DNA of 64,000 nucleotides from Macrostomum lignano (Eukaryota): positions 116,665 through 180,664 of the forward strand of contig NIVC01002363.1 in NCBI GenBank assembly GCA_002269645.1. The letters are read 5' to 3'. Positions within the stretch are counted from its first letter, which is position 1, and the number at the start of each line of letters is the position of its first letter. The notes beneath the pieces were generated by a model. That model worked only from the letters and a program-made list of their open reading frames with translations, was not told the origin of the DNA and did no database searches. The translations under genes and the position numbers were made by a program. Shown here one piece after another: positions 15,752-61,130 of the stretch.

Positions 15752-15779
15752 GTGAGCTGGCGGCGCTGATATCGTGGAT

Positions 15780-17347: not shown

Positions 17348-17409
17348 GTGAGTGTTTTTCGAAAGCAGAGTTTGATAACTGGTTTTAGCTGCCAGCTTGA
17401 ATATCGATG

Positions 17410-22590: not shown

Positions 22591-22982
22591 AGTTGTAACT
22601 TTTAGTTCTTTGGTTTTACAGACGGAGTTTCTAGGGCACATGTTTGTAGATTAAATTCTATGTCAGCTAACGCATTGGTGGCCTGTTTCACTATTTACAG
22701 CACAATGATTGATGCCAGCTCCTGGTTAAGTTTCAAAAAAGTGATTGGGTCAGTCAGTAAATTATAACAAATCTTTCTAAAAAAATAATTTATTTTTTAT
22801 CTATCTTCCGCTATCAGAACTGAATTTTTAGTTTCTTAGTCTTTTCAAACTTTGCATCGCTTTGAACTTGCTGCTACTTGCTAAATGATTTGAAATTCTG
22901 TTTATTGATTAATTTTTTTACTATCACATTCGTATTTGTCAGGAACAATAAACTTTACCATTCCATAAAAAATTTCAATCAG

Positions 22983-31996: not shown

Positions 31997-33837
31997 GCAC
32001 CAGGGGCTTTAGCACCAGGGGCTTTAGCACCAGGGGCTTTAGCACCAGGGGCGCCAGCACCAGGGGCTTTAGCACCAGGGGCGCCAGCACCAGGGGCGCC
32101 AGCACCAGGGGCGCCAGCACCAGGGGCGCCAGCACCAGGGGCGCCAGCACCAGGGGCGCCAGCACCAGGGGCGCCAGCACCAGGGGCGCCAGCACCAGGG
32201 GCGCCAGCACCAGGGGCGCCAGCACCAGGGGCGCCAGCACCAGGGGCGCCAGCACCAGGGGCGCCAGCACCAGGGGCGCCAGCACCAGGGGCGCCAGCAC
32301 CAGGGGCGCCAGCACCAGGGGCGCCAGCACCAGGGGCGCCAGCACCAGGGGCTTTAGCACCAGGGGCGCCAGCACCAGGGGCGCCAGCACCAGGGGCGCC
32401 AGCACCAGGGGCGCCAGCACCAGGGGCGCCAGCACCAGGGGCGCCAGCACCAGGGGCGCCAGCACCAGGGGCGCCAGCACCAGGGGCGCCAGCACCAGGG
32501 GCGCCAGCACCAGGGGCTTTAGCACCAGGGGCTTTAGCACCAGGGGCGCCAGCACCAGGGGCTTTAGCACCAGGGGCGCCAGCACCAGGGGCGCCAGCAC
32601 CAGGGGCGCCAGCACCAGGGGCGCCAGCACCAGGGGCTTTAGCACCAGGGGCGCCAGCACCAGGGGCGCCAGCACCAGGGGCGCCAGCACCAGGGGCGCC
32701 AGCACCAGGGGCGCCAGCACCAGGGGCGCCAGCACCAGGGGCGCCAGCACCAGGGGCGCCAGCACCAGGGGCGCCAGCACCAGGGGCGCCAGCACCAGGG
32801 GCGCCAGCACCAGGGGCGCCAGCACCAGGGGCGCCAGCACCAGGGGCGCCAGCACCAGGGGCGCCAGCACCAGGGGCGCCAGCACCAGGGGCGCCAGCAC
32901 CAGGGGCGCCAGCACCAGGGGCGCCAGCACCAGGGGCGCCAGCACCAGGGGCGCCAGCACCAGGGGCGCCAGCACCAGGGGCGCCAGCACCAGGGGCGCC
33001 AGCACCAGGGGCGCCAGCACCAGGGGCGCCAGCACCAGGGGCGCCAGCACCAGGGGCGCCAGCACCAGGGGCGCCAGCACCAGGGGCGCCAGCACCAGGG
33101 GCGCCAGCACCAGGGGCGCCAGCACCAGGGGCGCCAGCACCAGGGGCGCCAGCACCAGGGGCTTTAGCACCAGGGGCTTTAGCACCAGGGGCGCCAGCAC
33201 CAGGGGCGCCAGCACCAGGGGCGCCAGCACCAGGGGCGCCAGCACCAGGGGCGCCAGCACCAGGGGCGCCAGCACCAGGGGCGCCAGCACCAGGGGCGCC
33301 AGCACCAGGGGCGCCAGCACCAGGGGCTTTAGCACCAGGGGCGCCAGCACCAGGGGCGCCAGCACCAGGGGCGCCAGCACCAGGGGCGCCAGCACCAGGG
33401 GCGCCAGCACCAGGGGCGCCAGCACCAGGGGCGCCAGCACCAGGGGCGCCAGCACCAGGGGCTTTAGCACCAGGGGCTTTAGCACCAGGGGCGCCAGCAC
33501 CAGGGGCGCCAGCACCAGGGGCGCCAGCACCAGGGGCTTTAGCAACAGGGGCGCCAGCACCAGGGGCTTTAGCACCAGGGGCGCCAGCACCAGGGGCGCC
33601 AGCACCAGGGGCGCCAGCACCAGGGGCGCCAGCACCAGGGGCGCCAGCACCAGGGGCGCCAGCACCAGGGGCGCCAGCACCAGGGGCGCCAGCACCAGGG
33701 GCGCCAGCACCAGGGGCGCCAGCACCAGGGGCGCCAGCACCAGGGGCGCCAGCACCAGGGGCGCCAGCACCAGGGGCGCCAGCACCAGGGGCGCCAGCAC
33801 CAGGGGCGCCAGCACCAGGGGCGCCAGCACCAGGGGC
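31997..33837. repeat. 15-bp satellite (~123 copies, GCACCAGGGGCGCCA; variant GCACCAGGGGCTTTA)
   Basis: Near-perfect tandem array; gives (GAPGA)n and (PLVLA)n ORFs. Confidence 0.95.
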
Positions 33838-35791: not shown

Positions 35792-36780
35792 TGCTGGCTA
35801 AAAGTTGACAGAAGCCATGGCCATTAGGCCAAGTGATCAGAAACAACTTCGGCATTGCCTACATATATTTAGAGGGATAGCGACGTTTGCCAGCCGACAT
35901 TTGCCAGCCGACGTTTGCCAGCCGACGTTTGCCAGCGGTACATTTGCCAGCCGAAGTTTTCCTGCCGGACGTTTGCCTGCGGCACGTTTGCCAGACGACG
36001 TTTGCCTGCCGGAAGTTTGCCAGCTAAAATTTGCTAATCAATATAAAGCCAGTCAGTGAAAAACTTGATACTGAAATATTCCCAGTTTAGTCGTCTGGCA
36101 AACGTCGGCTGGCAAACGTCCCGCAGGCAAATGTTCGACAGGCAAACTTCGGCTGGCAAACGTCCCGCTGGCAAACGTCCCGCAGGCAAATGTCCGGCAG
36201 GCAAACTTCGGCTGGCAAACGTCCCGCAGGCAAATGTTCGACAGGCAAACTTCGGCTGGCAAACGTCCCGCTGGCAAACGTCCCGCAGGCAAATGTCCGG
36301 CAGGCAAACTTCGGCTGGCAAACGTCCCGCTGGCAAACGTCCCGCAGGCAAATGTCCGGCAGGCAAACGTCGGCTGGCAAACGTCGGCTGGTAAATGTCG
36401 GCTGGCAAACGTCCCACAGGCAAACCTCGGCTGGCAAACGTCCGCAGGCAAACGTCGGCTGCCAAACGTCGGCTGGCAAACGTCCCACAGGCAAACCTCG
36501 GCTGGCAAACGTCCCGCAGGCAAACGTCGGCTGCCAAACGTCGGCTGGCAAACGTCCCGCAGGCAAACGTCGCTTTCCTTCTAAATACATGTAGGCAATG
36601 CCGAAGTTGTTTCTGATCACTTGGCCTAATGGCCATGGCTTTTGTCAACTTTTGCCAGCAAACGTCGGCTGGCAAACGTCGGCTGGCAAATGTCGGCTGG
36701 CAAACGTCCCGCTGGCAAACGTCGGCTGGCAAACGTCGGCTGGCAAATGTCGGCTGGCAAACGTCCCGCAGGCAGACGTC
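35792..36780. mobile_element. Foldback-like element with minisatellite-built arms
   Basis: Unique ~90-bp block at 35792-35885 inverted at ~36565-36660; internal GGCTGGCAAACGTC subrepeats in opposite orientations. Confidence 0.7.
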
Positions 36781-37987
36781 GTAGACCCTTATATAGGTTA
36801 GCTCGTATTTTTAGTAAAATTTGGGTTGATGGTGGAGTCCCTTTCAAGTAATTTGAAGAATTGATTCAGAGACTACATCGTATCAGGTCGTATCAGGTTG
36901 ATTTTATACATGTATATAGCCACGCCGCGTGCATGCAAATGCGGTGGAACTCAGCCACAATCGATTTAAGCGATCGATCTGACCTGCTTATCTAACTAAT
37001 AAGCCTTTAAATGTTAAATTTTGGACTTTAGAAATGCACAGAGACTACACTTGGCCTTGAAGGCACGTGTTTTGTGAGTGCACTTGCGAGAGAGGGAAAG
37101 AGAGGACTTGGAGGGACAGACAGGGCGTCACCCTGTCTCGTCCTAGCCGCGGTCTGCAGGCCGAACTATAAATGAATAAACTATATGGAGAGAAGATTTT
37201 CTCCACTTCTGCTCCCTGCAGATGTAACACATCATTTCCGGTGGCTTCTGAAGGCCTCTCACCAACTTGAATGCCTGCTACCCTTCTGTCACGATCGACA
37301 GAGGCCTTAAATCAACAGAGACAAGGCTTTGTAATTTACAGTGTACTGTGGCTCACAGTTGGTCCAAACCAAACAGCAATAGCAAAGAGAGATCTTTTCT
37401 TTAGATAGTCAATATATTTATAGTCCATCCTGCGGACCGTCAAGGATTAGCTCTCCGAATGAGATTGAGAACAGACTCAGGGATCTGTGTACATGTTTTT
37501 TATTTTCAGCCTTTATATTGTTATTGAATGCGTGTGCCGCACAGGTTTAAACTGGTTAGCAACAAAGGAACCCGAACGGAGGAAATATTGATTAAAAATG
37601 AGTGACAGCGTTGCAGAAAAGTACTCAGAAGAATAATGAAAAATTTAGGTGGCGAACTAAGGTAAACCAAATAAATTTGCTAATTTAACGATGAAGGGCT
37701 ACATAAACGAGCAAACGTCAATACGGCTCGTACTTGGCCTTGATAAATGACCCAACATGTATTCGATGAATTAACTTCAAAGTGACAAACAAGTACTCGT
37801 ATGGAGTAAAATGGCTTTAAAGACTCAAAATCAACCTGACTCAATCGACTTCTTCACAGACTCGATCAATCTTTTCAGAAGCTTTTTTGAAACTCCAGCT
37901 GGATATACGTAAAATAGTTGGAAACGACAAAGAAGACAGGATTCTAGGTATAGGCTTCATCAGCAACTGTCATACCGTTTTGTCTTT

Positions 37988-39066
37988 ACAACAGCAACAA
38001 CAAAAATGCGCAGTTAGCATCACAGGGCGCGTCTAAGGTCGGCGCGTCTAAGGTGGCGAACGAACGCCAACGCCGGCCGAATCCGGGCCGCCAGCGTCAG
38101 CCAGCTAGCAGTCGACGAAAAGCCGAGAGCGCGCCTGTCCCCGCCGGTAGGGTGCCTGCAGTGTCGGCAGCAGCATCTCCTGCACAGGTAGTGGGCAGTA
38201 TGTCTCGGCGCGGATGATATGGCCTGCCAGCTGGAGTCACCGACGGCGCAGCAGGTCGCTTGGACGGAGCAGACCGGCCGGTTTTACAATGCTGCGTTGG
38301 TCACTCGCTCGTAGCCGATCTTGAAGACGTCCGCATCCAGGTTTCAGTGTTGTACAACAGGGCGGTTTCAACCACCGTCTGGAACAACGCCGCCCTCTAG
38401 CGGTCAGGTGGCCTCGGATTGCAGAACTGCCCTCGCAGAACGGAAGGCAGCCCAGGCAAGCCAGGAACCAGACCGCCGAGGCAGACAAACTGCTGACAAC
38501 ACGAGAGCTCCGCCACCTGTCCATCAGCGCATCGGTACAAAATCACAGCCTCGATGTCGTCCGGCACGCAGAGCACGACATTTTTCTGCATGTTGACCAC
38601 CAGGCCGACACCACCAGGTCGACCGCAACTAGTAGCTTGTCCAGTTGTCGCTGGGTGCCCTCGACAGTTGAGGACAGCAGGGTGAGATCGTCGACGTAGC
38701 CAAGCACGCTGAGCTATCTCTCCGGTTGACGTTGACCCACGCACCGCCGCAACAGAAAGCCGTCGTCGTTGGTAGGAAGAGCGATCCACACAACATCCAG
38801 TCAAGCACCAGAACGAATAGAACGGCGCAAGTGTATCTCCGAAGAGTACCCCGGAGGATGTCTCAAAGAAGTCCGATTTTTGTCTCAAAGAAGTTCGATA
38901 GGCCGTCCGGTGTTGAAACAGCAGCTTTCGTATCGTAGTACATCGCCATGATGGCGGAAATCAGCTGCTCTGGCACGTTGTATGCACGGAGCACCTTTGG
39001 AAGCACGGACCTGACGACCGAGTCGAACGCCTTCTTGAAATCTATGAAGAAGACAATCGGGATCAA
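37988..39066 (-). mobile_element. 5'-truncated, frameshifted RTE-like non-LTR retrotransposon
   Basis: FIDFKKAFDSV, SGVLFGDTLAPF, LGYVDDLTL, LLYNTETW, LQLAGHIIR..RRGQ; (TTG)n-like 3' tail at 37988-38006. Confidence 0.85.
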
Positions 39067-39462: not shown

Positions 39463-39819
39463 GCAATGCTTTAAAATGACTGTCTTTGCTGAATTTTTCC
39501 TGACTACTAAACTTGTACTTCCCCAAACTTCAGCGAATGAGTATTCAGTAAAGCCACTAATTCAAAATCAGGCGTCCAATTTAAGGTAGCTAGCTAATCG
39601 TTAGCTGCAGCTTAAGGGCAGCGCAGCTTTGTCTTAATAAAATTCAATAAAACACTGATTAATGACATCAACCAATACCTAACCAAAATGTACTTAGGAC
39701 TTGATCAGACCCGGATCTCCCACTGTATTCTATCAATCTGGTCGTTCTATATTCGTGCGTTGGATTAAATTTGGCATACAAAGTGAACAAAAGGCCAAGA
39801 AAAGCAAAATTCAATTGGG

Positions 39820-40035
39820 CCTGGCCATAGACTGCTGACACGTATTTATTCCCCAATTGGGCCCGGCCATAGACTGCAGACACGTATTTATTCCCCACTT
39901 GGGCCCGGCCATAGACTGCAGACACGTATTTATTCCCCACTTGGGCCCGGCCATAGACTGCTGACACGTATTTATTCCCCACTTGGGCCCGGCCATAGAC
40001 TGCAGACACGTATTTATTCCCCACTTGGGCGCAGC
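39820..40035. repeat. 42-bp tandem repeat (~5 copies)
   Basis: GGGCCCGGCCATAGACTGCAGACACGTATTTATTCCCCACTT; paralog at 60960-61130. Confidence 0.9.
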
Positions 40036-41999
40036 CATAGACCACACAGAAGTATTTTTGCCTAGCGCAATAAACCTCCAATGCTTAAATAATATTTTAC
40101 TTTTTTAACAGCTTTTTATCGGCTAGTCTATATTTACAAATATATATTTGTGATGCAATATTACGTAATAACCTTCAGTCCTCCACTATGTAGCAAGCGC
40201 CGCACAGTCTGTACTTAAATTTTTAGTTTTTTAGATTTTTAGATTTTTAAAAAGTTGTATTAAAGCACGAAAAAGTTACAATCTGGTTTTATTTTTTGAG
40301 TCTCCGGTTTACAGTTTGTACTTTTTTCGAAACTTTCGCTAGTCAAGCCAGTTTGTGGCAGTTTTTTAAAACCGTTGAAATTTGTTTTGATTTTTCCAGT
40401 CTGGTTTACAGTTTGTTTTTTTCTCGCGGTAGGTTTGTCAGTCAAGCCGTTTTTGGCAATCACTAACAATTAATTACGAGTAATCCATAACTGTGAAATA
40501 TCCTTTAACTCACTCCAAGCTTTAGCCCTTATTTATGGACTAATAGGTGTCAGGGTTAATAAGTGTTGCCTAACTGATTATGGCTGTGGATAATTTTATG
40601 CTACTATTATTATTATTATTATTTTGCTCGTATTATATCATAACTACTATTTCATGTCTAGTCAGTTATCCTCAAGATTTTAATATGCATACTAATTATT
40701 CATATAAACTAATATATCGATATATGAGGTTACCGCTATCCCCATCCGGATATGCCTGTCTCTGTCTACCTGTGTCGCAACGCTTATTGCGCAGCAGCCG
40801 AAAAAGCACTTCAACATACAGAGTCTAATATTGACGTCTTGAATTTTACTTTTAAAGCGACAGTATTAGTGTAAACCTCTAGACGAAGAATAAAAAATGC
40901 CTTAGTTAGAGATTGTGTTTGCTGAATTTTTACTGTCTACTAAAATTTTACTTGCACTTTAGGTTATTCGCCTAAATCTGTGGAATAGCTTCCCAAAATC
41001 TAAGCGAATGATTATCCAGTTAAGCCACTAAGTAATAATTCAGACGTCAAATTACAATAGCTAACTTTTTGGCAGTTTTTAAAACCGTTGAAATCTGTTT
41101 TGATTTTTCCGGGCTTTGGTTTGGTTTGCAGTTCATTGATTTTTTCGGTACTTTTGCAATTCTATAGCCAGTTTATGTTAGTTTTAAAACAGTTAAAATC
41201 TGTTTTCATTTTTCGAGTCTCTGCTTTACAGTTTTCCTTTTTCGGTACTTTTGCAATTCTAGCCAGTGTTTATGGCAGTTTTTAAACACTGCAGTTGAAA
41301 TTTGTTTTTAGCGCGTATTTTTAGTCTCTGGTTTACAGTTTGTTTTTTTCTCGCGGTAGGTTTGTTAGTCAAGCCATTTTTTGGCAGTTAGCTATTACCG
41401 GTTTATTAACCATAACTCATAACTGCAATATCCTGTGAACTCCCTCCACGCTTTAGCCCTTATGTATGCACTAATAGGTGGGCAGGGTTAATAAGTGTTG
41501 CTTCACTGATTATGGCTGTGGATAATTTTTGGCTACTAATATTTTTATCATCATATTAATTATAAACTAATATATCGATATAAGATTAACGCTATCCCCA
41601 TCTGGATATGTCTACCTGTGTCGCAACGCTTATTGCGCAGCCGAAAAAAGCTTCAACAGAGTCTAATATTGATGTCTTGAATATTACTTTTTAAGCAACA
41701 GTATTACTGTTGGTAGTACTACAGTAGCAGTAGTACTTCGCCCCTTCAACTGCACACACTTGTGCTTGCTGACCAACGTCAGCAAATGCATTCTGTTGGA
41801 ATGAGGTCCTTCCCAGCTGCTTCACAAGGATGTAGTGAATGTGTCGTCAGTGGAATGTCCATGCAAGATGTCTTCGAGCTATCGTAGATTCTCACTTTAA
41901 GATTTGCATCCAGTGCCTGTTCAACACGACGATGTCCTCTTGGTTCCATTGTCTCATAGCTCGTATTGGGACTATATAAATATCGGATTTTGAGCTCTA

Positions 42000-45641: not shown

Positions 45642-48463
45642 ATGGCCGGTGTCGAGTGTCACTCAGGCTGGTTGCCTGAAGTCAATTGCGACAGTCGAGA
45701 GATCGAGAGAATTTTGCAAGAGCTACAAAATACAAACAATACATGGATGAAAGGTTTCTGCCAGCTTGCTATAGCCCACCTGTACACTCTACCTGGCTTC
45801 TGTAATTTGACTGAAGCATGGAAGGCTCTGAATTCCGCCAGTCAGCCAGACGAAGAGGTAGAACATAACTTATTTAACCTACCGACCATTGACATTCGAT
45901 TTCTTGCCACAGCAATGAAACTAAGGCTTGAGAAAATGCAGTTAGGACACCCATCTAAGCACGAAGATTTAAAGAATGAATTAACGACTTTATGGGCAGC
46001 TCAGGATGAGTCGGTGAAGGCAACTTGCTTGGTTGCCAAAGGCTGGACGATGCACTGGTTTGCAGTCGGACCGCAGCGAGACGAAGTTTTGAAATTGTGC
46101 CACAAAGCATTAAAGGATGCTCAAGAAAAATTAGCCACTATACCTGATGATGCTGGTCAATTGAGGCATGTCAAATTTCTCTGTCTGTTTGAGCTGGCTT
46201 GTACTTACTTCCAACAGCGAGATGATCACCATAAAATTCTTCAGGAAGAGCTTGACCTGTGGACTACTACCAAAATGTTATATGATGAAAACAAATGGAA
46301 TCACCCGCTGTTTGAGCTTGACTTTTACAGGGCCGTCGCTTCCATTCCGAAACACTTTGATGACTGCAGAACTTTCGCCGATGAGAAGTATTGTGAAATC
46401 ATGAATAAGTCTAGCTTGTTGAATCAACTCTTTGAAGCTTATTGCGCTCTTCCGGAAATCTACGACGTGCTGAAGAAACAAAAAAATGGCAAAGATCTGG
46501 CAGAGGATTTTAGAACTAAAATAGGTAAATTGCTGGAAGAGGGAACCAATTTCAACGAATGCGCGATGCATAAAAGATTTTTGCGTCGAAGAATCGAGTC
46601 AACTGAATCAAAGACTGCAATCGACTTGCTCAAAAGTGAAGAGAACAAATGGAAGAACGAGTACTGGTTTGCCAATAGACTCATCATGCTAGAAATATTG
46701 GTAGATTATTCACTGGTTGAAGATTTCATGCAACGGTTCGAGTCTCTCTGTACAAACTTTCCATTAATGGCACCGGAAATGCGCTTAGAAAAAGGCATAT
46801 TTCTGTTGAAGTGCGGCAGCGTCGAAGAAGGAATGCACAGCCTCACCTGGGCAATGAATGACTATCTGCATCCTCCGCTAAACTTTAAGCCTTACTACTC
46901 TAGCAAGCTAAAGGATGTAGAGTCGTTCTTGAAGGATTCTGAGCGTGATTTGTATCTGATTTGGATTGAAAGTCAGTTTAAAACTGATTTTAAGACTTAT
47001 CACTTCGATGACTCCATTCGAAAGTACCGGACTGAGCTCACAAGGAAAGATCTGACGAACAAACATCGCCATTTCATCAGTGAGCACATCGGAAGGCTGC
47101 TGATGAAGAAGTCGCAATTTGAAGAGGCGGAGCAAAAGTTCAAGTCTCTGCCTGACGCACTTGAGCACAAAAACGCAATGATTGCTGACTCCCTCTTGTG
47201 TCAGGCAGAGAGCTTGTCGAGCGGTGATGACGTCACAGAAGTATGCAAGGCCAAGCTACAGGAGTATAAAGCACAGCCAGATAATGCAGTTCACACAACC
47301 AGCATCGGGATGCGGCTGTACCTGCTGAACGAGTGTGCAAAGCTAGGCTGCAGAGACGCCATTCATGAGGCTCTGCTTCTGCTGGAGGACATCCGGAAGC
47401 AGAGTGGCGGAGGTCACTTGTTGCAGCCAGCTCCAAACCATTTGTTCCTGCACAGCAGTCGCGTCTACGTGTTCTGCTCCCGGCTGCTTCAGCTGAGAGA
47501 GCAGGGCTTCCATATCGAGCGAAGAAAAAGCTTTTTGGACTCTGGCGGTGACCAGATGGGTGACATGCTGGACAAAGTAGAGCAAATCTTGGCCACTGAG
47601 TTGTATCCAAGAAGAATTCGACTGAAAATGACACAGCTGGGCTTGAAGTATGAATCAGTAGAGGAAATGCTTCAGAGTCCCGAGGCTGAGCGCAGCATTT
47701 GGCACACGCTGGAGGAGTCCCGAAAAGCACTCGATAGCTTCTGGACTCAATTCGTCTCTAAAGTAGAGAAGCAGGAAGCTGTCTCTGAGTCGAAGAATGT
47801 TCCCAGATATTACCCATTTGCCCGCCGTGATTCGAAAAGCAGCACTGAAAGCTTTTCAAACCTTTTCAAAAACAATTGGAGCGATCAAGCAAAACTGTTT
47901 ACTTCACTACTTCAAAGCATGAAAAGCACTGTTGATTGCCTCACCCAGGCTGAAGAGAATGGAGTTGAACTTGATGCATGCGTGAGTTCTCTGGAAAATA
48001 TTAAAAAAGCTAGGTTAAAAGATGAAGTATCAGATGATCAGCTAAACGATTTCAAACAGCAGCTGGAGAAGCTCAAGAAATTTCGCAACACTGCAAAAAG
48101 TTCCGCAAGTAGTAGTCAGTCAAAGCAAACAGTCTCAATCGACAAGCTTAGAAAGTCAAGTGAGAAATTTATCAAAATGCTACAGAAACCATTCCCTCTC
48201 GCGTTTCGAGCGAATGACGAAGTCTGTGATTGGATGATCCGGAAGGAAGAAGCCATTGATTCCAACCACGGTTGTTGGCACGTACACTGGTGCAATGAAG
48301 TCAACTCAGTAAGCACGATGAGCAGGTTAATCTTGCCAGATTCAACCAAGAAATCAAAGAAAGATTTGATCAGAAGAAGAGTGGGCCAATTGATGTTCTG
48401 GCTTTGGCTCATTGCGCTGCGGAATTCGCTGAAGATGCCAGGCTCGTTCTAGAAGAGTACACG
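45642..48463 (+). CDS. TPR-like + putative HEPN-like RNase + CCCH protein, coding exon 1 of 4 (1-nt disruption at ~48311)
   Basis: 936-aa ORF with TPR-like helical pairs; LEESRKALD, YYPF, LQKPF, WCNEVNS; the shifted frame continues KHDE..LEEYT for 51 open codons to donor ACG|GTAAGT. Confidence 0.8.
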
Positions 48464-49524
48464 GTAAGTTTTTCTTAATTCCTTTTTTAAGAATCAAGAG
48501 AAACTATTTTTAATTGGACATTTTAAAATGGAGATCATCGAACAAAGATTATTCAAATGCTGTTTTCAAGCTCTTTTCGATAGTGTAGCAGGTGTAATTT
48601 TACTTATTTGTTCGATCTCGCAATTTCCACTAAATACCACCAAGTTGTAGCAGATTTATTTGTTCTGCCTAATTGAATCCCCCGTTTGTCACTAAGTTAT
48701 GACTCTTTCCTAGGAAATTTCCTGGTTCACTAGATTTCTTTGAAATCTCGTGGTAGCGATGAGTGCCCGAGCGGTAAGACACTGTTCTAAATTGCTAAAT
48801 TAAATCCAAAATTACAGCGTTCCCGGGGATCAAGGGTGTCCAGCGGCAAGCCTTAATACCTAATATTTGTCTGTCTTCTAATGCCTAATAATTTAATGAA
48901 TCTTATGACCTTCTTAATACCCCTTGAACCTGTACGGCTTTATCTCTACTTCTGGGTCTGTACGACCTTTATTGCCTGTACGGCCTTTTCCCTACTTCTG
49001 GTATAAGAAATGAATAAGCAAAGATCATCTCTCAGCAAAAATTTCCTTTATCAAAAGAGGTAAGCTAGGAAGGAACAAACTAGAGCTTGTTATGTTATGT
49101 TATAAGAAACGAGACCAAATGGCTTGCTAAGTTGTGTCGACAGCTCTTGACTCAATCGATAAGTAAGCGAGGTCTTTTATTAGTTAATTTGCAAGTACGT
49201 ACATTTAGAAAGTACAGTGCATCGCGTATATGTACATAGAGCGCTCAATGCTAACACAACACCTCCCTACCATAGAATGGGAAATATAAAAATATTCGAA
49301 AGAAAAAAAACCTTATTCGATCACGACATCTAACAAAAACGATTAAAACTAACGAAGCAATCGATAATAATCGTCGAACTTGAAAAACAAGATTAGGGGA
49401 ATAAAAAAACAAAAATCTAAATTCTTAAATCAAAATACTTCATCTTAAGCTTTACGAGTTATTAAGCAAAAATCAATTAAACCTTTTAGTTAAATCAAAG
49501 ACTGGCATTTACATTTATACTTAT

Positions 49525-52500
49525 TTAAAAACTGTCCTGATACCTCATCGGCTTCTTGATGAGTCGCCACTTGGCTGTGCGATATTCGATCTGATCAGAT
49601 GCAGAGGCCGGCTGCGCTGAGGCCGGCTGCGCTGAGGCCGGCTGCGCTGAGGCCGGCTGCGCTGATTCGTCGAGATTTTGATGTACATCTAGTTCTTGGT
49701 GATATTCGTCAAAAGGAACTCCAATTTTCCGTAGTCTGAGAAATCGTCTGTTCCGTCTGAGAAGCTGACCTGTCTCCGTGCGGACGAAAAAAGATCTTCT
49801 GGAGTCGCCCACCTCACTGTCGACCTCAGCCGCCATCCAGTCTCGGCGACCACGCTGAAGCCACACAGGGTCGCCAACGTTCAGTTGATGAAGCGGGCGA
49901 GCACCACGATTGTAAAGTTGTGCCGCTCGGTTGCGCTGATTCTCGAAAGCCTCAATACTAGCTTGAATGTGGGTCTCTTTAGGACGAAGATCTTGGAAAG
50001 TCGCTGGCAGATCACACCGCAGTTTTCTTCCGAATGCCATCTCAGCAGGACTCGGAAAGCCGCTTCCAATCGGTGTGTTTCGATAGTGCAACATGGCCAT
50101 TTCAAAGCTTTGCCCAGTCTCGTGGCACTTCTTGATCATGTTCTTGGCTGTCTGCACGTACCGCTCGGCTTTCCCATTAGACTGCGGGTAGGTCGGACTG
50201 GAGGTCCTGTGCTTTACTTTAAAGATCGATAGCATTAGCTGGAACTCGCGAGACGTGAATTGTGGACCACCATCACTGATGAATTTCTCCGGGACTCCCA
50301 AGTTCTGAAAGTGCTCGCGGAGAATTTGCACGACAGCTGATGTCGTGGTTGACCGCAGTCGGTTAATGCTCATCCAGTGACTGTAGAAGTCTACGTAGAG
50401 CAAATAGGTTGCACCAGAGAACTAAAAAAGATCCGCTGAGCATACTTGAAACGGAAAATCCGGGAATAACCACCGACATTAGTGTCTCCTTTGACTGTGT
50501 CTTCATGTTTTTTTGACACGACTCACATTGACCTACTGTGCGCTCGATGCAGTTGCGCATGCCAGGCCAATAAAAATAATCTTTCGCCTTTAGGTCCATT
50601 TTGACTATGCCTGGATGGCCGGCGTGTAAAATGTTGAGAACGCTTTTTCTTGAGTTTCCTATGGGTACGTAGATTCGATATTTAAGACAGAGCAGGCCTG
50701 CTACCTCGGTCAGATCATGCCGAACGTCCCAGAAAACCTTTAAGTCTTCAGACAGGCTCGATCGACGCTCCGGCCACCCATCTCGGATCACATCCAGCAG
50801 CCGCATGCTTGTCGCATCCGATGATGTTTCAGTGCGTATCATGTCGAGAATTTCAGCGTCACCACTGAAGCAGCGCTCCACTGAAAGGACCTGCCATCTA
50901 GAGCTTCTTGAAGCTGCACTGCCAAGTAGTCCGTCGGCCCGTATGCTCGGCTCAGAGTGTCGGCCACGTACAACTCCTTTCCTGGTGTGTACTTGACCCG
51001 GGTGTCATACGGTTGCAGCTGTAATAATAGGCGCTGAATTCTGGGAGTAGTGTCACAGAGCGCCTTTTTGAAGATTGCTTCCAGTGGCTTATGATCACTC
51101 TGTTCTTGAACTGTGCGGCCCCACAGGTATCGATGAAACTTTTTGCAGCCGTATAAAATAGCTAGCAGTTCTTTTTCGATTTGTGCGTATGCTTTTTGAG
51201 CGTCTGTCATGGCTGACGAGGCAAAATCTACCGGTCGGTCGTCTTGAAGTAGAACAGCTCCGATGCCACTCTTGCTTGCATCCACTGAGACAACCACCGG
51301 CTTGCTGACATCAAATGTTGCTAGAACGCGCTCAGAGCAGAGTTCAGTGATGATGGAGTCGTACGCCTTGTCATGCTGGTTCAGCCAGCTCCACATAACG
51401 TCCTTTTTTAGTAGATGTCGCAGTGGCTCTGCAGTCGAAGAAAGGTGTGGGCAGAACTTAGCAAGATACGTAGCAAGAAGCAAGAACTTAGCAAGATAAG
51501 ATACGTAAAAATCGTCTCAGCTGTTCTCGCTTAGCTGTTATGCTCTCAAAATCATTCGGCCGAGTCATTTCTTTGATTGCCTTAACTTTTCCTGGGTCTG
51601 CTCTTAAACCCATTCGATCCAAGGATATCGCCTAAGTAGTTCAGCTCTGTTAAGCCAACTCTCATCTTCAGTGGGTTCAATGTGACATTTGCACGGCTGC
51701 ACTGCTCAAGAAGGTCACGGACGGCTTGATCATGCTCTTCGACAGTTTGACCCCACACGATAATATCGTCGAAAAAATTCTTAGCATTTTTAAGTGATTT
51801 GTGACATTTTCCTCCATACGCTTCTGGAACACCTCGGGAATTGAGCTGAGTCCATACGGAAGACGTTTCCAGCGGTAACGGCCACACGGTGTGTGAAAAG
51901 TGGTCAGAAACGAGCTTTATTTGTCCAGCTTGAGTTGATGAAAACTCTCATTTGCGTCAAATGAGCTGTACATTACAGCTCCAGCTGTTGCTATTCGAAC
52001 CTCCGCTGTCGGTATCGGGTGGTATTCTCTAATTATGAATAGGTTCAGATAGGTCGGGTCGAGACACAGTCTCATTGATCCATCCTTTTTCCATACTATG
52101 GCGACATTCGAGACCCATTGTGTTGGCTCATCAACCCGAACGATGGTGCCATCTTTCTCTAGTCATTCAAGCTCGCACTTTAGAGGCTGGTATGCTGCAA
52201 ATGGCACCTTTCGAGGTGGCTGAACCTTTGGAACAGCGCTATCGCTTAGCCGAATCGTATAAGGTTGACTCATACAGCCTACACCGTTAAAAACTTTGGC
52301 GTAACTAGTTTTCAGTTGGCCTGGAGTGAGCTGTGATGGCTTTGTGACCTTAGCGAAAGTCTTTGGACTTTGTTGGATACTAAATAACTTTTTGATTAAT
52401 TCTAGGTCTTTCAGTGCAGACTTGTAGCCAATTATTGGCGTCGAGTTCTCGCCTACTACCACTAGCTGAATTCGGAGATTCTTTTTGCAGGGTGATAACA

Positions 52501-53547
52501 CAGTCAAGTGTGTGACACCTACATCATCCAGCTGCTGCTTATTGTACGTCATCAGTGTCCATGAGGTTGGCTCGATCTGAGCCTTTGGAGCCAGCTGAGT
52601 TAGGTGCCTCAATGGTATGACGTTGACGTCTGCCCCTGTGTCGACCTTGAACAGCAGCTTTCTGCCAGTCTCTTTAACAGTCAAACTCACCATCATTGGG
52701 GAATTGCTAGTTGGTGGATTATCCTGGCCGCAGTTTGGCTTCTCCAGCGTCATGATCGATGCCGACATAGGAACTAGAGACTCGTCTTCTTCAACCAGCT
52801 CATTAATCTTCTTGGACGAGCGGCACATTCATTCTTTCGACCACAGGTGCTGCATTGCTTTCCATAGGCCGGACACTTGCGTCGTTCGTGTTGGTAACCA
52901 CAGTAACCGCAGCTGCGTCCCGGTGGCTTGAATTGGCTGGCTGACCTTGAACCGCGTCCACTGATGAAGATGTCGCACTGAGTGGAATTCGACTTGGCTT
53001 TGCTAAGGCTCGAGCTTGTCGCTTTGATGTCTCAGAAGCTCGTCCGATTTGAATCGCACGGTCCAGTGTGAGCTTTTCCTCCCTCAACAGTCTTTTTCGA
53101 AGTGCTGGGTCGTTGCTCCCGATGACAATTTAGTCTCTAATGACGCTGTTGACGATATTCTCCCGATTTGCTGGCTTTTCGTAGTTGCATCGTTTTATTA
53201 ACTGACGCAGAGAGCTAACAAACTGATGGAATTCCTCTGCATCACCTTGGACTCTAGTCCTGAAATGATAGCGCTCAAATGTCTCCTTAGAGTTTGGCTC
53301 ACAATATTCTTGAAATTTTGCGACTACCTGCTCGTATGTCTTTACTTCCTCTGCTGCAAATGTTGAATAGATGTCTTGCCCTTCGGCTCCTAATGCAGTA
53401 AGAAGTGTTGCAATTTTCACTTCGTCGTCCTCGCTCGTCTTCTTGGTAGCCTTCATTTAGAGATCAAACGCCATTTTCCATCTTGGCCAATTCTCCGCAC
53501 GGTTTGTATCAAAGGCGATTCGGTTCTGGAGGCCTCAGACCATCCAT
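49525..53547 (-). pseudogene. Gypsy gag-pol, multiply frameshifted
   Basis: gag MDGLRPP.., protease DTGADV, RT FFDDIIVWG, RNase H VDAS/SDHKPL, integrase H..H..C..C and ISDGGPQF spread over 7 ORFs. Confidence 0.88.
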
Positions 53548-53556
53548 GCTTATTTT

Positions 53557-54975
53557 ACAAGTAGTATGAAGACGCACACGTCTTTTTGCCACCAGTGAAC
53601 GGGCTTCTTTTTAGACGTGGGTCTTCATACTACTTGATAAACCTAGTTTTGTACCGATAAAAAAGAACTGAGAATCTCAAGAAAAATTTAAATCTCTACT
53701 TATCCCATTTTTCTCTTTGTCTGTTCTGTTTTTCTCCTCTCTAATCTCTCTCTAGTCTCCCCTCTCCTCTCGCTTTTCTCTCGCCTTGCCTTATCTTTAT
53801 CTCCTCTTTTCTCTTCTCTATCTATTCTCTTTCATTTCCTCTCTTATCTGTCCCGCAACCATGAACTGGAATCTTCTACAATAGGCCCTCGATCTAAAAA
53901 AATTGTCTAAAGTCTCTAGAGCGTAGCAGGGTTATACAACTCCATTTAAGCTGGTTGTTTCGGCGCAAGATCCTCTAGCATCAGCTTAAGTGCTTGGAAA
54001 GCCAGGCCAGTTTTGTGGGACCTAATACTCATACTGACTGATACTATCAATCAGATAGTACACTAAACTGACATAAGATACGGGGTTGCAAAAAAAGCTA
54101 TAAATAAAGTTATTCCAAAACTGTACATACCTACTTAATAAGCCGCGTATCGCCTGACCTTTTAGCCTGGGGGGGGGATGTACACATAGTGACTTGGAGC
54201 AGCGAAATCAGACGGCGGCAATATAGACCAATATAGTACAGCAACTATGCTATAGAAATTCGAAATCGGCTTATTCGCACCATGTTCTCAAAATTATAAT
54301 GAGCAATAATGCGAAAGTCATGTGATTTTTTGAAAAATCGATTTTTTCGGCACTGCAGAATCGTAGGGAAACAAAACTTTAGACACTTGTAGATTTTTGC
54401 ATTGCGCATCCAACTGCACTGCTTTGAAGCCCAAACTCAAAAAGCTTCGTAGGAAAAATTGGCGAAATAATAAAATGAAGGTCATTTTTTACCCAAAAAA
54501 CCCACCAAAACTGCATAAAGACGCCGAAATAAATTAAAGTGCCATATACCATTTTGTAGGAAATTTAGTTTTACAACTTTGATCCTTAGATGTCGAAGCC
54601 GTATCTCGTAAGGTGTACCAGAATTTTGAGATCTCCCAGAAGCACTTTTGAAAAAATCGTCTTTCCACTTAATTTACGGCTTAGTAATAAAATCTCTGCA
54701 CTTAAAAGTATATTCATTCGATAGATTTAAAAGTTTTCTATCGATCAACACCTCACTCAACTCAATCGGTGCAGTGGTTGCAAAACAGGAGCATTTTTTG
54801 GCGAAAAAACGTGAAATTTAAAAATGCTATGTAAGAGTCTAACTTATTTACTCGTAAATACTTTCTAGCCCATGTCGGCCTTCGGCCGCCATGGGTAGAA
54901 ATTATTCACTCGCCCTCGGCCCCTAACGGGGCCTCGGGTTCTTTCGCTCTCGGCTCGTTCACTGGTGGAACTAGT
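53557..54975. mobile_element. Non-autonomous Helitron2/Helentron-like element, copy 1
   Basis: Asymmetric 13-bp sub-TIR CCACCAGTGAACG (53589, 54956); 16-bp terminal stem; CT-rich tract; inserted in a T run without TSD. Confidence 0.65.
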
Positions 54976-55291
54976 TGCAACTTAAGCTTGCGACGCCATG
55001 TTATGTTATAAGAAACGAGACCAAATGGCTTGCTAAGTTGTGTCGACAGCTCTTGATTCAATGGATAAGTAAGCGAGGTCTTTTATTAGTTAATTTGCAA
55101 GTACCTACATTTAGAAAGTACAGTGCATCGCGCAGATGTACATAGAGCGCTCAATGCTAACAAAACACCCAAGTTAGATGGTTTTATTTTCATGCCAGGC
55201 GAAGCTTTTATATAATAAACAAAGGGGGTGTGGGGTGCATCGTAATTGACGGGGACAACTCAAAACTAAATTAGATAAAATTTTTAACAAA

Positions 55292-57503
55292 ACAAGTAGT
55301 ATGAAGACGCACACGTCTTTTTGCCACCAGTGAACGGGCTTCTTTTTAGACGTGGGTCTTCATACTACTTGATAAACCTAGTTTTGTACCGATGAAAAAG
55401 AACTTTGAGAAGCTCAATAAAAATGTAAATCTCTACTTCTCCCATTTTCTCTCTTTGTCTGTTCTGTTTCTCTCCACTCTAATCTCTCTCTAGTCTCCCC
55501 TCTCCTCTCCTCGCTTCTAGCTCTCGTTTTATCTCTTATCTTCTCTTTAGTCTTATCTCTTCTCTATTCTCTTTCTCTCTCATCTGACCCGCAGCCATGA
55601 GCTGGAATCGAGTCTTCCATAATAGGCTTTAGAAGGCCTCGATATAAAAAAATTTCTAATGACTCCAGAGCGTAGCAGGGTTATATTTTGCAAAGAAAGC
55701 TATAAATAAAGTCTTTCCAAAACACTGTACATACCTACTTCAGAAGCCGTATCGCCTGACTTTTTAGTCGGGGGGAGGATTGTACACGTAGTGACTTGGA
55801 TCTTGCGCCCGACAAACTTTGTACTGGGCTTGCAATTCAAATGTGCCTGTTAAAGAGCTAAATTTAATACGAAATTCTAATCACGTGACGCCCGTTTATC
55901 GATCTAATTTCCCTTGGTCTGTGTGCGAGTCAAATGAAGCTCTATTACACGCCCTCCAAACCAAGCCGCCAAGCCCTCTCGCGTTGCCACAACCCCACTT
56001 GGAAGGGACGGGTGTGTACATTGTATGTACGATTATTCCTTCCTTTCCTTTCCTTTCTAACCAGCTTAACTCAGCCCAACGCCAAAGCCATGCAAGCAAT
56101 CGCATGCAAATGCAAATTATGCAAAGCGGTATGCGGCTTAATCTGATGAATTTTGGTGCAAAAAATGCATTTTTACCTCAAAAGAACATCGAATGGTTAT
56201 GAAACTCAAGAAATCTGTTAAATTAGCTGTATGGAATACTGTGCATTGGTTTCAGTGCAAAATTCTTACCATTTCCAGTTTAAATAGCCCCGAAACTAAC
56301 ATAAAAGTAAAAAGTCAAGTTTTCAGTTTTTTATCGATAATTTTTTACCCAATGAACCGAATCTCTAGAAATTGCACACAAATATGCCTCGTTATGTGGG
56401 AAATCAGGCGTCATTAAAATCTTGTCGTCCTATTGCGTTATTTTGCCTGATTTCAAGCAAAATATAAAAAAATCACTACTCTGATCGATTTCCAATCACT
56501 TTTGACACATGAGCACTTGTTGCAGACACTCAAAAACTTGGTAAATTTTAGCCAGACATTAGTACAACTAATTGCAGTGTCCGCATTTGATTTACCATTC
56601 TTTTAAAAATTTAATCACCCTTTTTTCTGGCACCCAATCAGCCAAAAATCACAAATTATCGATTTCTGATCGATTTTTCAACCCGAAAGCAGCGAAATCA
56701 GACGGCGGCAATTTAAACCAATATAGTACAGCAACTATGCTATAGAAATTCGAAGTCGGATTATTCGCACCATGTTCTCAAAATTATAATGAGCAATAAT
56801 GCGAAAGTCATGTAATTTTTTGAAAAATCGATTTTTGTCAATTTTCTCAGCACTGCAGAAGCGTAGGAAAACAAAGCTTTAGACACTTGTAGATATTTGC
56901 ATTGCGCATCCAACTGCACTGCTTTGAAGCCGAAACTCAAAAAGCTTCGTAGGAAAAAGTGGGGAAATAATAAAATGAGGGTCATTTTTTTACCCAAAAA
57001 ACCCACCAAAACTACATAAAGATACCAAAATAAATCAAAGCGCCATATACCATTTTGTAGGAAATTTAGTTTTACAACTTTGATCCTCAGATGTCGAAGC
57101 TGTATCTCGTAAGGTGTACCAGAATTTTGAGATCTCCTAGAAGCACTTTTGAAAAAATCGTCTTTCCAGTTAATTTACGGCTCATTTAAAAAATCTCTGC
57201 ATTTAAAAGTACATTCATTCGATAGATCTAAAAGTTTTCTATCGATCGACACCTCACTCAACTCAATCGGTGCAGTGGTTGCAAAACAGGAGCATTTTTT
57301 AGCAAAAAAACGTGAAACTTCAAAATGCATAAGAGTCTAACTTATTTACTCGTAAATACTTTCTAGCCCATGTCGGCCTTCGGCCGCCATGGGTAGAAAT
57401 TATTCACTCGCCCTCGGCCCCTGGCGGGGCCTCGGGTTCTCTCGCTCTCGCCCGACGCCGCCTTCGGCGGCGCCGGGCTCGGCTCGTTCACTGGTGGAAC
57501 TAG
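55292..57503. mobile_element. Non-autonomous Helitron2/Helentron-like element, copy 2
   Basis: Same termini and sub-TIRs (55324, 57485); ~890-bp extra segment 55801-56688. Confidence 0.65.
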
Positions 57504-57870
57504 GATTTATAACAAATAATACCGTATAAAACAAAGGATTTCTGATTGCTTGCTAAATTAGATTCGAATGTAGCTACTTATAGTAATACAATGGGGATTG
57601 GCCAGACCTTACATCAATAGCAAAAGCAGACGTGTGAAATATTTTGCTAAGCTTTGACGTTAGCATAAACTTAAATTCACTTAGAAGCTCGGCTGAAAAT
57701 AGAAAATACGGACTCTATTCCACTTTTTCTATTTTAAAATTTTAAAGAACCGAAAGTAGTGATGTAAAAAAATTGCTGACATTTGCAAACATTTAATTTT
57801 CCGACAGATCTATAAAACTCGGTTTACAACAAATATACGCTTGTATCATAAAACTAAATTCGATTTGCAG

Positions 57871-58507
57871 TACCCAGAGGTAATCATTCCAACGAAGCCA
57901 GACGCCATCGGCGAAAACTTCGAGTGGAGCCTGGTCTGCTACTCGTGTGCTCAGCCGAACGACGTATTGCGCAGCAGATGGCACCGCTTGCAGAATGAAT
58001 GTGCCAACTGTGACAAGTGCATTCTGCTGGTCAGAGAGAAGGCCAGTGTGGCACCAAGTGACGTTTGGCAGCGTGTCCGACCCAGACCAAGGAAACTCGT
58101 CAAGCTGGACATGTGCAGGAGATACAGCGATATAGAATCCTGCAACGGTTGCAATCGTTCTGAATGCGACTTTGCCCATGGAGACGCGGAGCTGCGGCAG
58201 TGGGAGCTGGAGAGAATCGGCAAATTCTCCTTCAACAAGCTGCTGGAGTCCAATCGATCAGCTGGGTCAGAACTGCCGCTGATTCTCTGCGAGCGACCTG
58301 CGGTCGAAGGAGGCTCGGAGACCCGAATTTTCTACACGGGTCCGGAGTCGCTTCCCGCCAGACTCCCTGCTGGGAAAGCACAAAATTCCTGCTATTCGCT
58401 CTGCAACTCTCTACTTGAAGGAACTGAGTGCCAGCATCAAGGCATATGCTTCAGTGCTCACTGTGCTGAGGAGGAGCAGCTGTGGAACATCATGCAACAG
58501 AAAAGAG
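57871..58507 (+). CDS. TPR-HEPN-CCCH protein, exon 2 (zinc ribbon + 2 CCCH fingers)
   Basis: TTTGCAG acceptor phase 0; CYSC..CANC, WQRVRPRP..CDFAHGDAELRQW..ER, C-x8-C-x5-C-x3-H. Confidence 0.85.
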
Positions 58508-58598
58508 GTTAAATCGAGATGCTTACAGAATTCTAATCTTTACGTTATAGCTCGTAATATTGAATAACGCTCGTGTTACAATTCATTAACTGTTTTAG

Positions 58599-59233
58599 AT
58601 AATTGGCCCGAACATCTGGTTTTAAGAATCGACAAAATCGAGCCCGAACTCATTGGCTGGAGCCTCGAATCGAGCTGCGACTACATGTACAAGCTGACCT
58701 GCTACAGGTGCTCCGAATCACTGGATCCTCTGAGAAGCAGATTCAAGCTGAAGGAAACACAGAACTGTGAGCGGTGCGACCAGAGCATCCTGCTGGTCAG
58801 ATCGAAGAACAATCAAATCAACAAGTGGCAACGCATCCGAGACAGACAAGGACATCTGGTCATATGTGATCTCTACCAATCAAACAAATGCAGGCGCTCC
58901 GAATGTGACTTCGCTCATGGCGATGTGGAACTGAAGCTGTGGAAGCTGGAGAGAATCGGCAAGCTCTCCTTCGACAAACTACTGAAGTCCAAACTGCCGC
59001 CGATTCTCTGCGAGCGGCCTGCGGTCAAAGGAGGCTCGGAGCCCCAGATTGTCTACACGGGTCCGGAGCCGCTTCGCGCCAGACTCCCTGTGAAACGTAA
59101 AGATTTCCACACTCTCTGCAACTCGCTGTTTCAAAGAAAAGAGTGCCTACATTACAAGTATAATCGCGGCAACTGCTTCTATGCTCACTGTGCTGAGGAA
59201 GAGCAGCTGTGGAACATATTGCGAAAGAAAAAG
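58599..59233 (+). CDS. TPR-HEPN-CCCH protein, exon 3 (duplicate zinc module)
   Basis: TTTTAG acceptor phase 1 in frame with ORF 58685; CYRC..CERC, C-x7-C-x4-C-x3-H, C-x8-C-x9-C-x3-H; donor GTAAGA. Confidence 0.85.
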
Positions 59234-60200
59234 GTAAGATAATCATATTGATATGCTATTAGAGTACGTTTTTAACCTTCGCTATTCTCTCTTCGTAAAT
59301 TAGAACCATGGTTTGGACCATAGATCTTATATTCCCTAGATAGGCCACTTTGTATGGCGTAAATAGAGAAAGCGCGACCGCTGTTTTTCGTCACTTGTGC
59401 TTTTGTGCTTGTGTTTTTCGTTTTTCGTCACATGGTTGCTTAAATTTTGAGTTCAGTAGCTTAGAGACATAGACGCTATTTTTGAGAATTTAATAGAACT
59501 TCTCATGAATTGAATAAAAAGCTACTCAATCAAACTATGAATGGTGCATGCACTGCAGAGACTACGGACGAAATTGAGTTCAGTAGTTGATTTTCGCGCT
59601 GTCGCAAGTTGCAAATGTTTTTACATTAGCTTTATGGCCACATGAGTGGTTAATGAGTGGCCCATCCTGTGTATATATGATCTTTGGTTTGGACTCATGT
59701 TTGATTTGGGTGCGCATTTTAGCAATGTGCATTGTAACACGATATAAATGTGTAAAAGCGTGCATTAAACGCTAGAAGCGGGCTTAAATGGCTCGTGATC
59801 GCGTATTGGCTGGAGTCATTTAATGCACGAGAAATATATATCGTGTTACAATACTACTCAATACTTGGTTTTTCTGGCTTAAATGGCTAGGTCACGATTG
59901 CGCACTGTGCTCAAAACCAAGTATTGAATCCTATATTCGGCTGTAAATGTTTTGATAAGCGGAATTTTCATCTATGGATCATCCTGTCAAATATTGTCTC
60001 ATTTTGAATTGCAGAATTGTATGCGAAAATTCTATCTTTAGCTATCAGAGATTTACTGTGTGCCAACTAAATCATGTTACCCTTCCCATATAATCTGTTT
60101 ATATATGACGCTGTTTTCTTGGCCTCTACCTACATGTACAAAATGCAATACAGAGTTACCTCCTCTTACGCTCGTATCTAACACGCTCAATTACATTTAG

Positions 60201-60553
60201 AGAAGTGGCCTCTGGAGCTGCGAGCACTGATCGACCGAATCCAGCCTCAGCCACAACCGAGGCAGCAGCAGCAGCAGCAGCAGCAAGGAAGTTTCGGAAC
60301 TGAACAACATTCCTTCGGAGAATGCGGCGCCCACAGGGCCAGCAACAGCAGATCAGAGCGGGGCTGCGCTGTAGGTCAAGATGCTCCTTGCTCAACGCAA
60401 CAGCAATTAGGAACTTGGCGGCCGGCAACATCAAATCGGAGCGGGACTGCACTATCTGCCGTAGGTCAGGCTGCTCCTTACCCACCACAACATCAAGGAA
60501 GTCGGCAGCCAGCGACATCAGGTCAGCAGAAGGACAAAATTCGCGACAAATAA
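60201..60553 (+). CDS. TPR-HEPN-CCCH protein, terminal Q-rich exon
   Basis: KWPLELRALIDRIQP echoes the NWPEHLVLRIDKIEP linker of exon 3; poly-Q; TAA 60551-60553; splice phase from exon 3 is off by one. Confidence 0.6.
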
Positions 60554-60959
60554 ATCAAAGGGTCAGCAGAGCTCCAAGAGCATCAGATTTGAGGATCTCC
60601 TTGAAGAGGAAGAATAACCTTTAAAAGACTGTCCTTGCTGAATTTTTCCTATCTACTATACCTTGTACTTACACTTAAGTTATTCGTCTAACTCTCTGGA
60701 ACAGCTTCCCGAAATTGAAACAAATTTTAGCGCACAAGGGCCGCTAAAAAGGAATCCGCGCAGTTTTGTCTTAATAAAATCAAATGAAACTCTGATTGAT
60801 GAAATCAACCAATACCTAACTAAAATGAGCTCGTGACTTGATCAGATCCCTCACTCCCTTTATACTTGTATTCTATCAATCTGGTGGTTCTATATTCGTG
60901 CGATGGATCAAATTTGGTCTACAAAGTGAACAAAAATCTAAGAAAAGCAAAATTCAATT

Positions 60960-61130
60960 GGGCCCGGCCATAGACTACAGAAACGTATTTATTCCCCACT
61001 TGGGCCCGGCCATAGACTACAGAAACGTATTTATTCCCCACTTGGGCCCGGTCATAGACTACAGAAACGTATTTATTCCCCTTGGGCCCGGCCATAGACT
61101 ACAGAAACGTATTTATTCCTCACTGGCGCA
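60960..61130. repeat. 42-bp tandem repeat (~4 copies)
   Basis: GGGCCCGGCCATAGACTACAGAAACGTATTTATTCCCCACTT. Confidence 0.88.

Follow-up and report, generated by a model that had tools for sequence, protein, structure and literature searches.

We analyzed a 64-kb stretch of the genome of the flatworm Macrostomum lignano (64,000 nt, positions 116,665 to 180,664 of contig NIVC01002363.1; hereafter the window), in which a gene on the plus strand, from 45642 to 59242, is one copy, split by a one-base deletion, of a multi-copy Macrostomum gene family. On balance, we lean towards reading this family as a lineage-restricted one that combines a tetratricopeptide repeat (TPR) region of IFIT-like character, an orphan helical domain and CCCH zinc-finger modules, and that probably binds RNA. 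In vertebrates, IFITs are TPR proteins that are induced by interferon and hold viral RNA bearing 5'-ppp or cap0 in a clamp. Put in terms of known proteins, the gene appears to be a variant of the TPR and CCCH RNA-binding proteins that carries an orphan domain and has an IFIT-like ancestry, a description that we consider reasonably supported by sequence comparison.

The supported gene model consists of three coding exons (45642-48463, 57871-58507 and 58599-59242) with a product of about 1365-1367 aa. Exon 1 holds a 936-aa plus-strand open reading frame (ORF) found in the ORF listing at 45642-48452, and is divided into 2 parts: a TPR solenoid (aa 1-598, 45642-47435), recognized from the ORF, from homology to the family members P0004 and P0006, from TPR matches and from hhalign alignment of the family with IFITs; and a conserved all-alpha C-terminal domain (CTD; aa 599-941, 47436-48463), recognized from family alignments and an AlphaFold model. 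Once the reading frame is repaired, the tail of exon 1 (KHDEQ...LEEYT, in the next frame as KHDEQVNLARFNQEIKERFDQKKSGPIDVLALAHCAAEFAEDARLVLEEYT) stops exactly at a GTAAGT donor at 48464. Intron 1 (48464-57870, 9407 nt, GT...AG), defined by its splice sites and by repeat pairs, contains nested decayed transposons; its acceptor AG lies at 57869-57870, and exon 2 opens in phase at 57871. Exon 2 (57871-58507) encodes the first zinc-finger module and is supported by its phase, its cysteine/histidine pattern, PDB matches and 95% identity to paralogue P0003, which also crosses the next junction, reading QQKR-D-NWPEH across intron 2 (58508-58598, 91 nt, GT...AG, phase 1). Exon 3 (58599-59242) encodes the second module, as judged by its ORF, its phase and its identity to module 1, and ends with a TAA stop at 59240-59242.

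The deletion lies at 48309-48310, located by a tblastn frame switch, the sequences of P0003 and P0001 and the frame translations. With paralogue P0001 as query, the tblastn alignment leaves frame 3 and resumes in frame 2 within 48308-48311, where the window has TCA G-T AAG and the paralogues have TCA GAT AAG, and the deletion splits an invariant NSDKH motif. The closest paralogue, P0003, reads NEVNSDKHDEQ; in the window, a GAT (Asp) codon has therefore lost its A. Left uncorrected, the ORF terminates at 48450-48452, which gives a 936-aa protein whose CTD is not intact and which has no fingers. No second lesion was seen after the break in the remaining 153 nt of exon 1 or in the two zinc-finger exons, and all zinc ligands are kept. 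Considering that the coding sequence past the break is otherwise intact, the window copy is either a very recent pseudogene or the product of an assembly indel, and as written it can give no full protein. P0005 (M. lignano, UniRef A0A1I8G528) has a frame break of its own about 25 nt upstream of the one in the window (window 48288-48316): its model begins in the +1 frame (…RKRPLILNKVVGMYTGA) and regains the true frame at NEVNSDKH, as would be expected from one additional A in TGCAA(A)TGAA. Two copies broken within about 30 nt of each other reflect either recurrent pseudogenisation or indel errors in long reads.

Judging from predicted proteins, the large ORF and the zinc-finger exons are a single fused gene. 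This fusion had been put forward in a preliminary description of the locus, together with the 9.4-kb transposon-filled intron that it has to span, and both held up: the 9407-nt intron contains rve, Integrase_H2C2, RT_RNaseH and RVT_1 fragments with long terminal repeat (LTR)-like repeat pairs, and 4 paralogous models (P0001, P0002, P0003 and P0005) read through the LEEYT|YPE(V) junction. P0001 (UniRef A0A1I8J5T1, M. lignano, 1346 aa) is 68% identical to the repaired model at 94% coverage, with the motif WCDEVNSDKH intact. Its identity to the window copy is mosaic, at about 50% up to residue ~480 and 95-100% beyond residue ~495, through finger module 1 as well (residues ~495-690 are nearly identical), which suggests recombination or gene conversion between paralogues. 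One could suppose that a TPR/CTD gene and a separate zinc-finger gene were falsely merged by gene prediction, considering that members outside the Macrostomum finger subfamily terminate shortly past the CTD, that intron 1 is very long and laden with transposons, and that the fused products are predicted proteins, not transcripts. We regard this as highly improbable, since exon 1 closes on a canonical donor in a repaired frame that is free of stops, exon 2 follows in phase right behind an AG and has no ATG until codon 81, and the identical junction recurs in all 4 models.

The same preliminary description had joined 4 exons into a product of about 1480 aa, which had to be shortened. The proposed fourth exon, a Gln/CAG-rich frame at 60201-60553 on the plus strand, falls outside the supported model by its clash of phase with the end of exon 3: its ttag acceptor (60199-60200) requires one carried-over base, and exon 3 supplies none, as its frame is in phase 0 at 59233 (a possible donor) and reaches TAA two codons on (...KKKVR*). 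A tail resembling this exon was absent from all paralogue models compared. Acceptors at 60153 and 60155, with phases worked out by hand, gave short, unconserved tails without support and were rejected. The interval 60156-60624 is rich in CAG/Gln, with overlapping ORFs of 120 aa (minus strand) and 100 aa (plus strand), and the region of the proposed exon looks like low-complexity rather than coding sequence.

Relatives of exon 1 were sought with a profile in an exhaustive HMMER search of 1.84 billion representative proteins, which found 15. Word-indexed searches were nearly blind to the family, returning 1 and 2 matches, with P0001 as the sole match to the repaired model. Ten relatives were looked up, half of them M. 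lignano proteins and half ORFs from ENA; the contigs of 4 of these 5 ENA ORFs are long and of high coverage (three in ERZ25074608, one in ERZ26859043). Retrotransposon genes lie near P0015 on its ENA contig, and no nucleotide similarity to the window was found in the ENA contigs. Among the relatives traced, the family is confined to M. lignano and at least 2 eukaryote-like genomes in ENA long-read assemblies, and in the latter its ORFs are intronless. On one ERZ25074608 contig, P0013 (the TPR half, 610 aa, at 3001-4833 of contig L005) is followed 20 nt downstream by a 239-aa ORF (4853-5572), which, judged by equal length alone, appears to be P0014, a CTD half; the pair appears to be a single family gene that a stop or frameshift has divided.

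The core of the family is a single-exon ORF that encodes a TPR solenoid of about 600 aa, starting with LECHF(T/K/N)WxPE, and then the all-alpha CTD of about 260-340 aa. Only the Macrostomum subfamily that contains the window copy has the zinc-finger exons; P0004 and P0008 have long tails of RGG-type repeats at the place where the finger exons would sit. Two distinct RNA-binding tails (CCCH and RGG) are therefore found at one point, and this is the best indirect evidence for a core that acts on RNA. The family is multi-copy and diverges fast, its copies recombine and some are broken, a pattern that by analogy would also fit a role in defense or genome conflict.

Each zinc-finger module comprises a CxxC...CxxC(xxC) zinc ribbon and 2 CCCH fingers, and the modules are 49% identical to each other. 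In module 1, the ribbon (CxxC...CxxCxxC) lies at 57937-58020, a first finger (C-x8-C-x2-C-x4-C-x3-H, followed by GDAELRQWELER) at 58114-58179 and a second (C-x8-C-x5-C-x3-H) at 58402-58461; in module 2, the ribbon lies at 58700-58777 and the fingers at 58865-58918 (C-x7-C-x4-C-x3-H) and 59117-59188 (C-x8-C-x9-C-x3-H), all on the plus strand. Three of the 4 fingers have the canonical C-x7-8-C-x4-5-C-x3-H spacing, and the last departs from it. The earlier assignment to the ZC3H7 style of CCCH fingers agrees in part with the best PDB match, a finger of ZC3H7A (2d9m, E 0.004; a TTP finger follows at E 0.028), and with the UniRef name of paralogues P0001 and P0005, ‘C3H1-type domain-containing protein’.

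The TPR region, likewise recognized before, is identified at the level of the family. The family profile matches LapB (E 3.5e-7) and consensus TPR (CTPR) proteins in the PDB, P0004 matches Pfam TPR_2 (E 7.4e-10), and P0002 is named ‘TPR_REGION domain-containing protein’ in UniRef. The window protein alone, raw or repaired, had no Pfam TPR match (nothing for exon 1); its TPR region is homologous to the N-termini of P0004 (E 1.5e-28) and P0006 (E 5.3e-19). Exon 1 opens with MAGVECHSGWLPE, a diverged version of the motif with which the family core starts. The pentapeptide CHFTW is invariant among IFIT proteins (PMC11462223). It is found exactly in P0004 at residues 12-16 (LECHFTW), as CHFKW or CHFNW in P0006, P0007, P0010 and P0013, as CHSGW in the window and as CHSKW in P0001.

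For the comparison with IFITs, the human IFIT1 query is 100% identical to PDB 5w5h, and the sequences of IFIT2, IFIT3 and IFIT5 were taken from PDB alignments. The hhalign signal of the family N-terminal profile became convincing only after IFIT2, IFIT3 and IFIT5 were added and the less diverged family members were used; against IFIT1 alone, or mammalian IFIT1-like sequences only, it was weak (24-44%) and barely above the off-register alignments. Against IFIT1/2/3/5, the local alignment of the family reached a probability of 80.7% (E 1.3e-5, score 51.2) over 355 collinear columns and the global alignment 91.6% (E 1e-7, score 41.3) over 421 columns, while the family without the window and P0001 reached 96% (E 4e-9, score 76.7) over 263 columns. 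As a control, shuffling in blocks of 34 columns gave scores of 29.3 ± 3.9 with a maximum of 40, against the observed 51.2; with the window and P0001 excluded, the next-best, off-register alignment scored 26.1 against 76.7. In the best alignment, collinear from CHFTW onwards, the other aligned blocks include LLAYVKH/TLAYLHT, EGWALLKCGGKNYERAK/KGxTLxCFGPTKYExA and DKALELLKKAL/DKAIELLERGK. From these alignments, it is likely that the N-terminus of the family bears a specific IFIT-type relationship, and it possibly forms an IFIT-type RNA clamp.

Several observations weigh against this picture, and they have to be set beside the explanation that some of them would favor, namely that the region is an ordinary TPR scaffold without kinship to IFITs, that CHF.W and the collinearity arose by convergence or as a repeat artefact, and that the gene encodes a generic TPR and CCCH regulator of the ZC3H7 type. 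TPR proteins score against one another generally, and off-register hhalign alignments reach scores of 26-35. HMMER searches of the PDB return LapB and CTPR proteins, not IFITs. The subfamily of the window and P0001, taken by itself, gives no collinear IFIT alignment in hhalign; the IFIT link of the window gene is therefore transitive, through its homology to P0004 and P0006. RNA-contacting positions of IFIT1, among which we take K151 to be one, are by eye not conserved in the hhalign alignment. The Pfam CCCH models stay under threshold (zf-CCCH_3 at E 0.02 is below the family cut-off), and a role in defense would be argued by analogy and by the fast divergence of a family with multiple copies. 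Finally, a 2013 survey found IFITs in jawed vertebrates only (PMC3688568), and a non-exhaustive literature search found no report of invertebrate IFIT-like genes beyond it. An ordinary scaffold nonetheless seems rather unlikely to us, as the in-register score is far above that of its next alternative and exceeds the block-shuffle maximum, as the alignment starts in N-terminal helices that are not TPRs and that carry the IFIT-specific pentapeptide, and as several further blocks match.

For the CTD, the question is whether it is a diverged HEPN RNase, as the preliminary description had proposed from the order of its motifs: fingers would bind RNA, TPRs would regulate and the HEPN domain, possibly a nuclease of bacterial derivation, would cleave. 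The motifs on which this proposal was built (LEESRKALD, YYPF, LQKPF and WCNEVNS(x)KH) are each found in the sequence, the domain is all-alpha, and its alignment has 8 invariant columns (E869, W879, W883, N888, K891, H892, H924 and E931 in window numbering) and 5 near-invariant ones; the invariant polar residues would suggest an active or binding site. The conserved motifs are L(K/R)(E/D)S(R/K)xxLD, YYP(F/H)AF, RRE(H)xI, AWHxxWxxxxNxxKH and AHxAAEFAE. The HEPN motif is Rx4-6H, commonly R-[NHD]-x-x-x-H, and in the invariant x-N-x-x-K-H of the CTD, at the end of a helix, the spacing from N to H equals that of the R-N-x-x-x-H form. However, the position of the Arg is occupied by V, I, L, H or D over the 17 aligned CTD rows. 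No HEPN family was found in Pfam at E<=10 with the repaired protein, nor in Pfam, PADLOC or NCBIfam at E<=1 with the 17 CTD rows, and the PDB gave zero matches by sequence to the CTD as a single sequence or as a profile (E<=10). A confident AlphaFold model was obtained for the CTD of the compact member P0007 (264 aa, 17-row alignment; pLDDT 83.7, pTM 0.83, 12 helices), which replaced a first model, of the P0001 CTD with its 145-aa insert, that had a pLDDT of 65 and meaningless Foldseek matches, likewise without HEPN. Foldseek with the P0007 model against the PDB gave a best E of 1.9 (probability at most 0.07, TM at most 0.25) with no HEPN among the entries listed, and no neighbour among the viral folds of BFVD. 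Small helical bundles are hard for Foldseek to match; within the reach of these tools, the structural check that the preliminary description had itself suggested, on the domain with its frame repaired, returned no HEPN fold. A bacterial origin found no support either, with no recognizable bacterial protein among the relatives traced (P0010, P0012 and P0016 were left out). We therefore judge a HEPN RNase to be very unlikely. The CTD is not TPR-like either (hhalign at most 1% against the family TPR region or IFIT); it is a helical domain whose set of polar residues is conserved, an orphan without detectable relatives among known folds and families.

Taken together, the domains suggest that the family protein binds RNA. 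Its RNA affinity would come from the CCCH fingers or, in paralogues, from the RGG tails; the IFIT-like solenoid may serve as a scaffold or clamp, possibly adding RNA affinity of its own; and the CTD, with its invariant E, W, W, N, K, H, H and E, could be an effector or assembly module. By analogy with the proteins it resembles, a role in RNA surveillance, defense or post-transcriptional control is likely. The RNA-defense function given to the gene in the preliminary description is accordingly plausible in one respect, through the IFIT-like N-terminus, and not in the other, through a HEPN RNase. A bolder reading, to which we give little credence, is that of an IFIT-like RNA-surveillance family in flatworms and at least 2 eukaryote-like genomes, in which an IFIT-type clamp is fused to an undescribed helical effector domain with interchangeable CCCH and RGG tails; the CTD could then be a new nuclease or RNA-modifying enzyme built on the invariant E/N/K/H/H/E. 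If this were true, IFIT-type defense would predate the jawed vertebrates and would have had a new effector fold added to it.

The window also contains many repeats. Inside intron 1, a Ty3/gypsy LTR retrotransposon lies on the minus strand at 49092-55169, identified by its Pfam matches and its direct repeats: an LTR-like pair (49092-49263 and 54998-55169, 97% identical, 5.9 kb apart) flanks reverse transcriptase, RNase H and integrase in the order that defines Ty3/gypsy elements. Its gag, protease, reverse transcriptase, RNase H and integrase ORFs are fragmented (49525-53456), and the element is therefore decayed. Another pair of repeats, each about 750 bp long, is found at 54198-54952 and 56688-57450. 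Upstream of the gene, at 8579-12058 on the minus strand, a Ty3/gypsy pol ORF of 1159 aa is intact and encodes protease, reverse transcriptase, RNase H and integrase; this element looks younger than the decayed one in intron 1.

Tandem repeats are unusually abundant in the window. A 15-nt minisatellite, GCACCAGGGGCGCCA, is present at 31997-33837 in 123 copies with 96% matches and creates a block of 74% GC and long spurious ORFs on the minus strand. More minisatellite arrays lie at 21357-22609, 24561-25380, 15777-16300, 17402-17789, 1288-1825 and 36090-36781, with units of 24 nt (52 copies), 25 nt (34 copies), 6/30 nt, 28 nt, 31/60 nt and 14-15 nt. A 42-nt tandem unit (TTGGGCCCGGCCATAGACT.CAGA.ACGTATTTATTCCCCAC) is found on both flanks of the gene (39815-40042 and 60958-61124) and probably belongs to a dispersed repeat family. 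Repeats of the window recur in another M. lignano contig, NIVC01000052.1, at 71-85% identity. The segment at 38083-39061 on the plus strand is 71% identical in nucleotides to that contig (L003, 6550-7579), and its protein is 35% identical to residues 295-595 of a chimeric 4203-aa model, P0019; it is a piece of a transposon or of a repeated gene and has no relation to the TPR/zinc-finger gene.

The CTD, with its confident model, 8 invariant residues and no structural neighbour, is a well-defined target for further work. RNA interference and transgenesis are established in Macrostomum lignano, and function is therefore directly testable. At the same time, the failure of the HEPN call when it was tested is a caution about assigning domains from the order of motifs. 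As textbook effectors of interferon, IFITs have been reported from jawed vertebrates alone (PMC3688568), and a flatworm TPR family collinear with them would suggest that the scaffold predates the interferon system and lends itself to combination with other modules.

Compared with known systems, the family shares with HEPN-containing TPR proteins such as TTC3 and DZIP3 a general layout: TTC3, like the family, has a TPR region followed by an all-alpha domain. With the HEPN RNases (RNase L, Ire1 and Cas13) it has in common an N...H motif in a helical domain, but neither by profile nor by fold does the CTD match any HEPN family, and its motif lacks the Arg. TTP/TIS11 and ZAP-type CCCH proteins share the C-x8-C-x5-C-x3-H spacing and the FAHG..EL signature (PDB 1m9o and 1rgo were matched); the likeness is limited to the finger, the remaining protein being unrelated. 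ZC3H7A and ZC3H7B (RoXaN) have N-terminal TPRs and C-terminal CCCH fingers as well, and finger 1 shares C.FAHG.AEL..WE.R with the ZC3H7A finger 2d9m. At E 0.004-0.026 this match is weak, and it extends over one finger only; the module of zinc ribbon and 2 CCCH fingers, and its duplication, are specific to the window subfamily, and we know of no IFIT-like motif or CTD counterpart in ZC3H7. Compared with the IFITs, whose TPR region is about 470 aa long against about 600 aa in the family, the family has two parts that IFITs lack, a helical domain of 260-340 aa and tails of CCCH or RGG type, and its flatworm host lies beyond the taxa from which IFITs are reported (PMC3688568). In common with IFIT1/2/3/5, it has a CHFTW-type motif at the equivalent N-terminal place (exact in P0004, ECHF(K/N)W in others, but CHSGW in the window copy) and a TPR region that is collinear over 260-420 columns (hhalign 81-96%), and both are multi-copy and fast-diverging.

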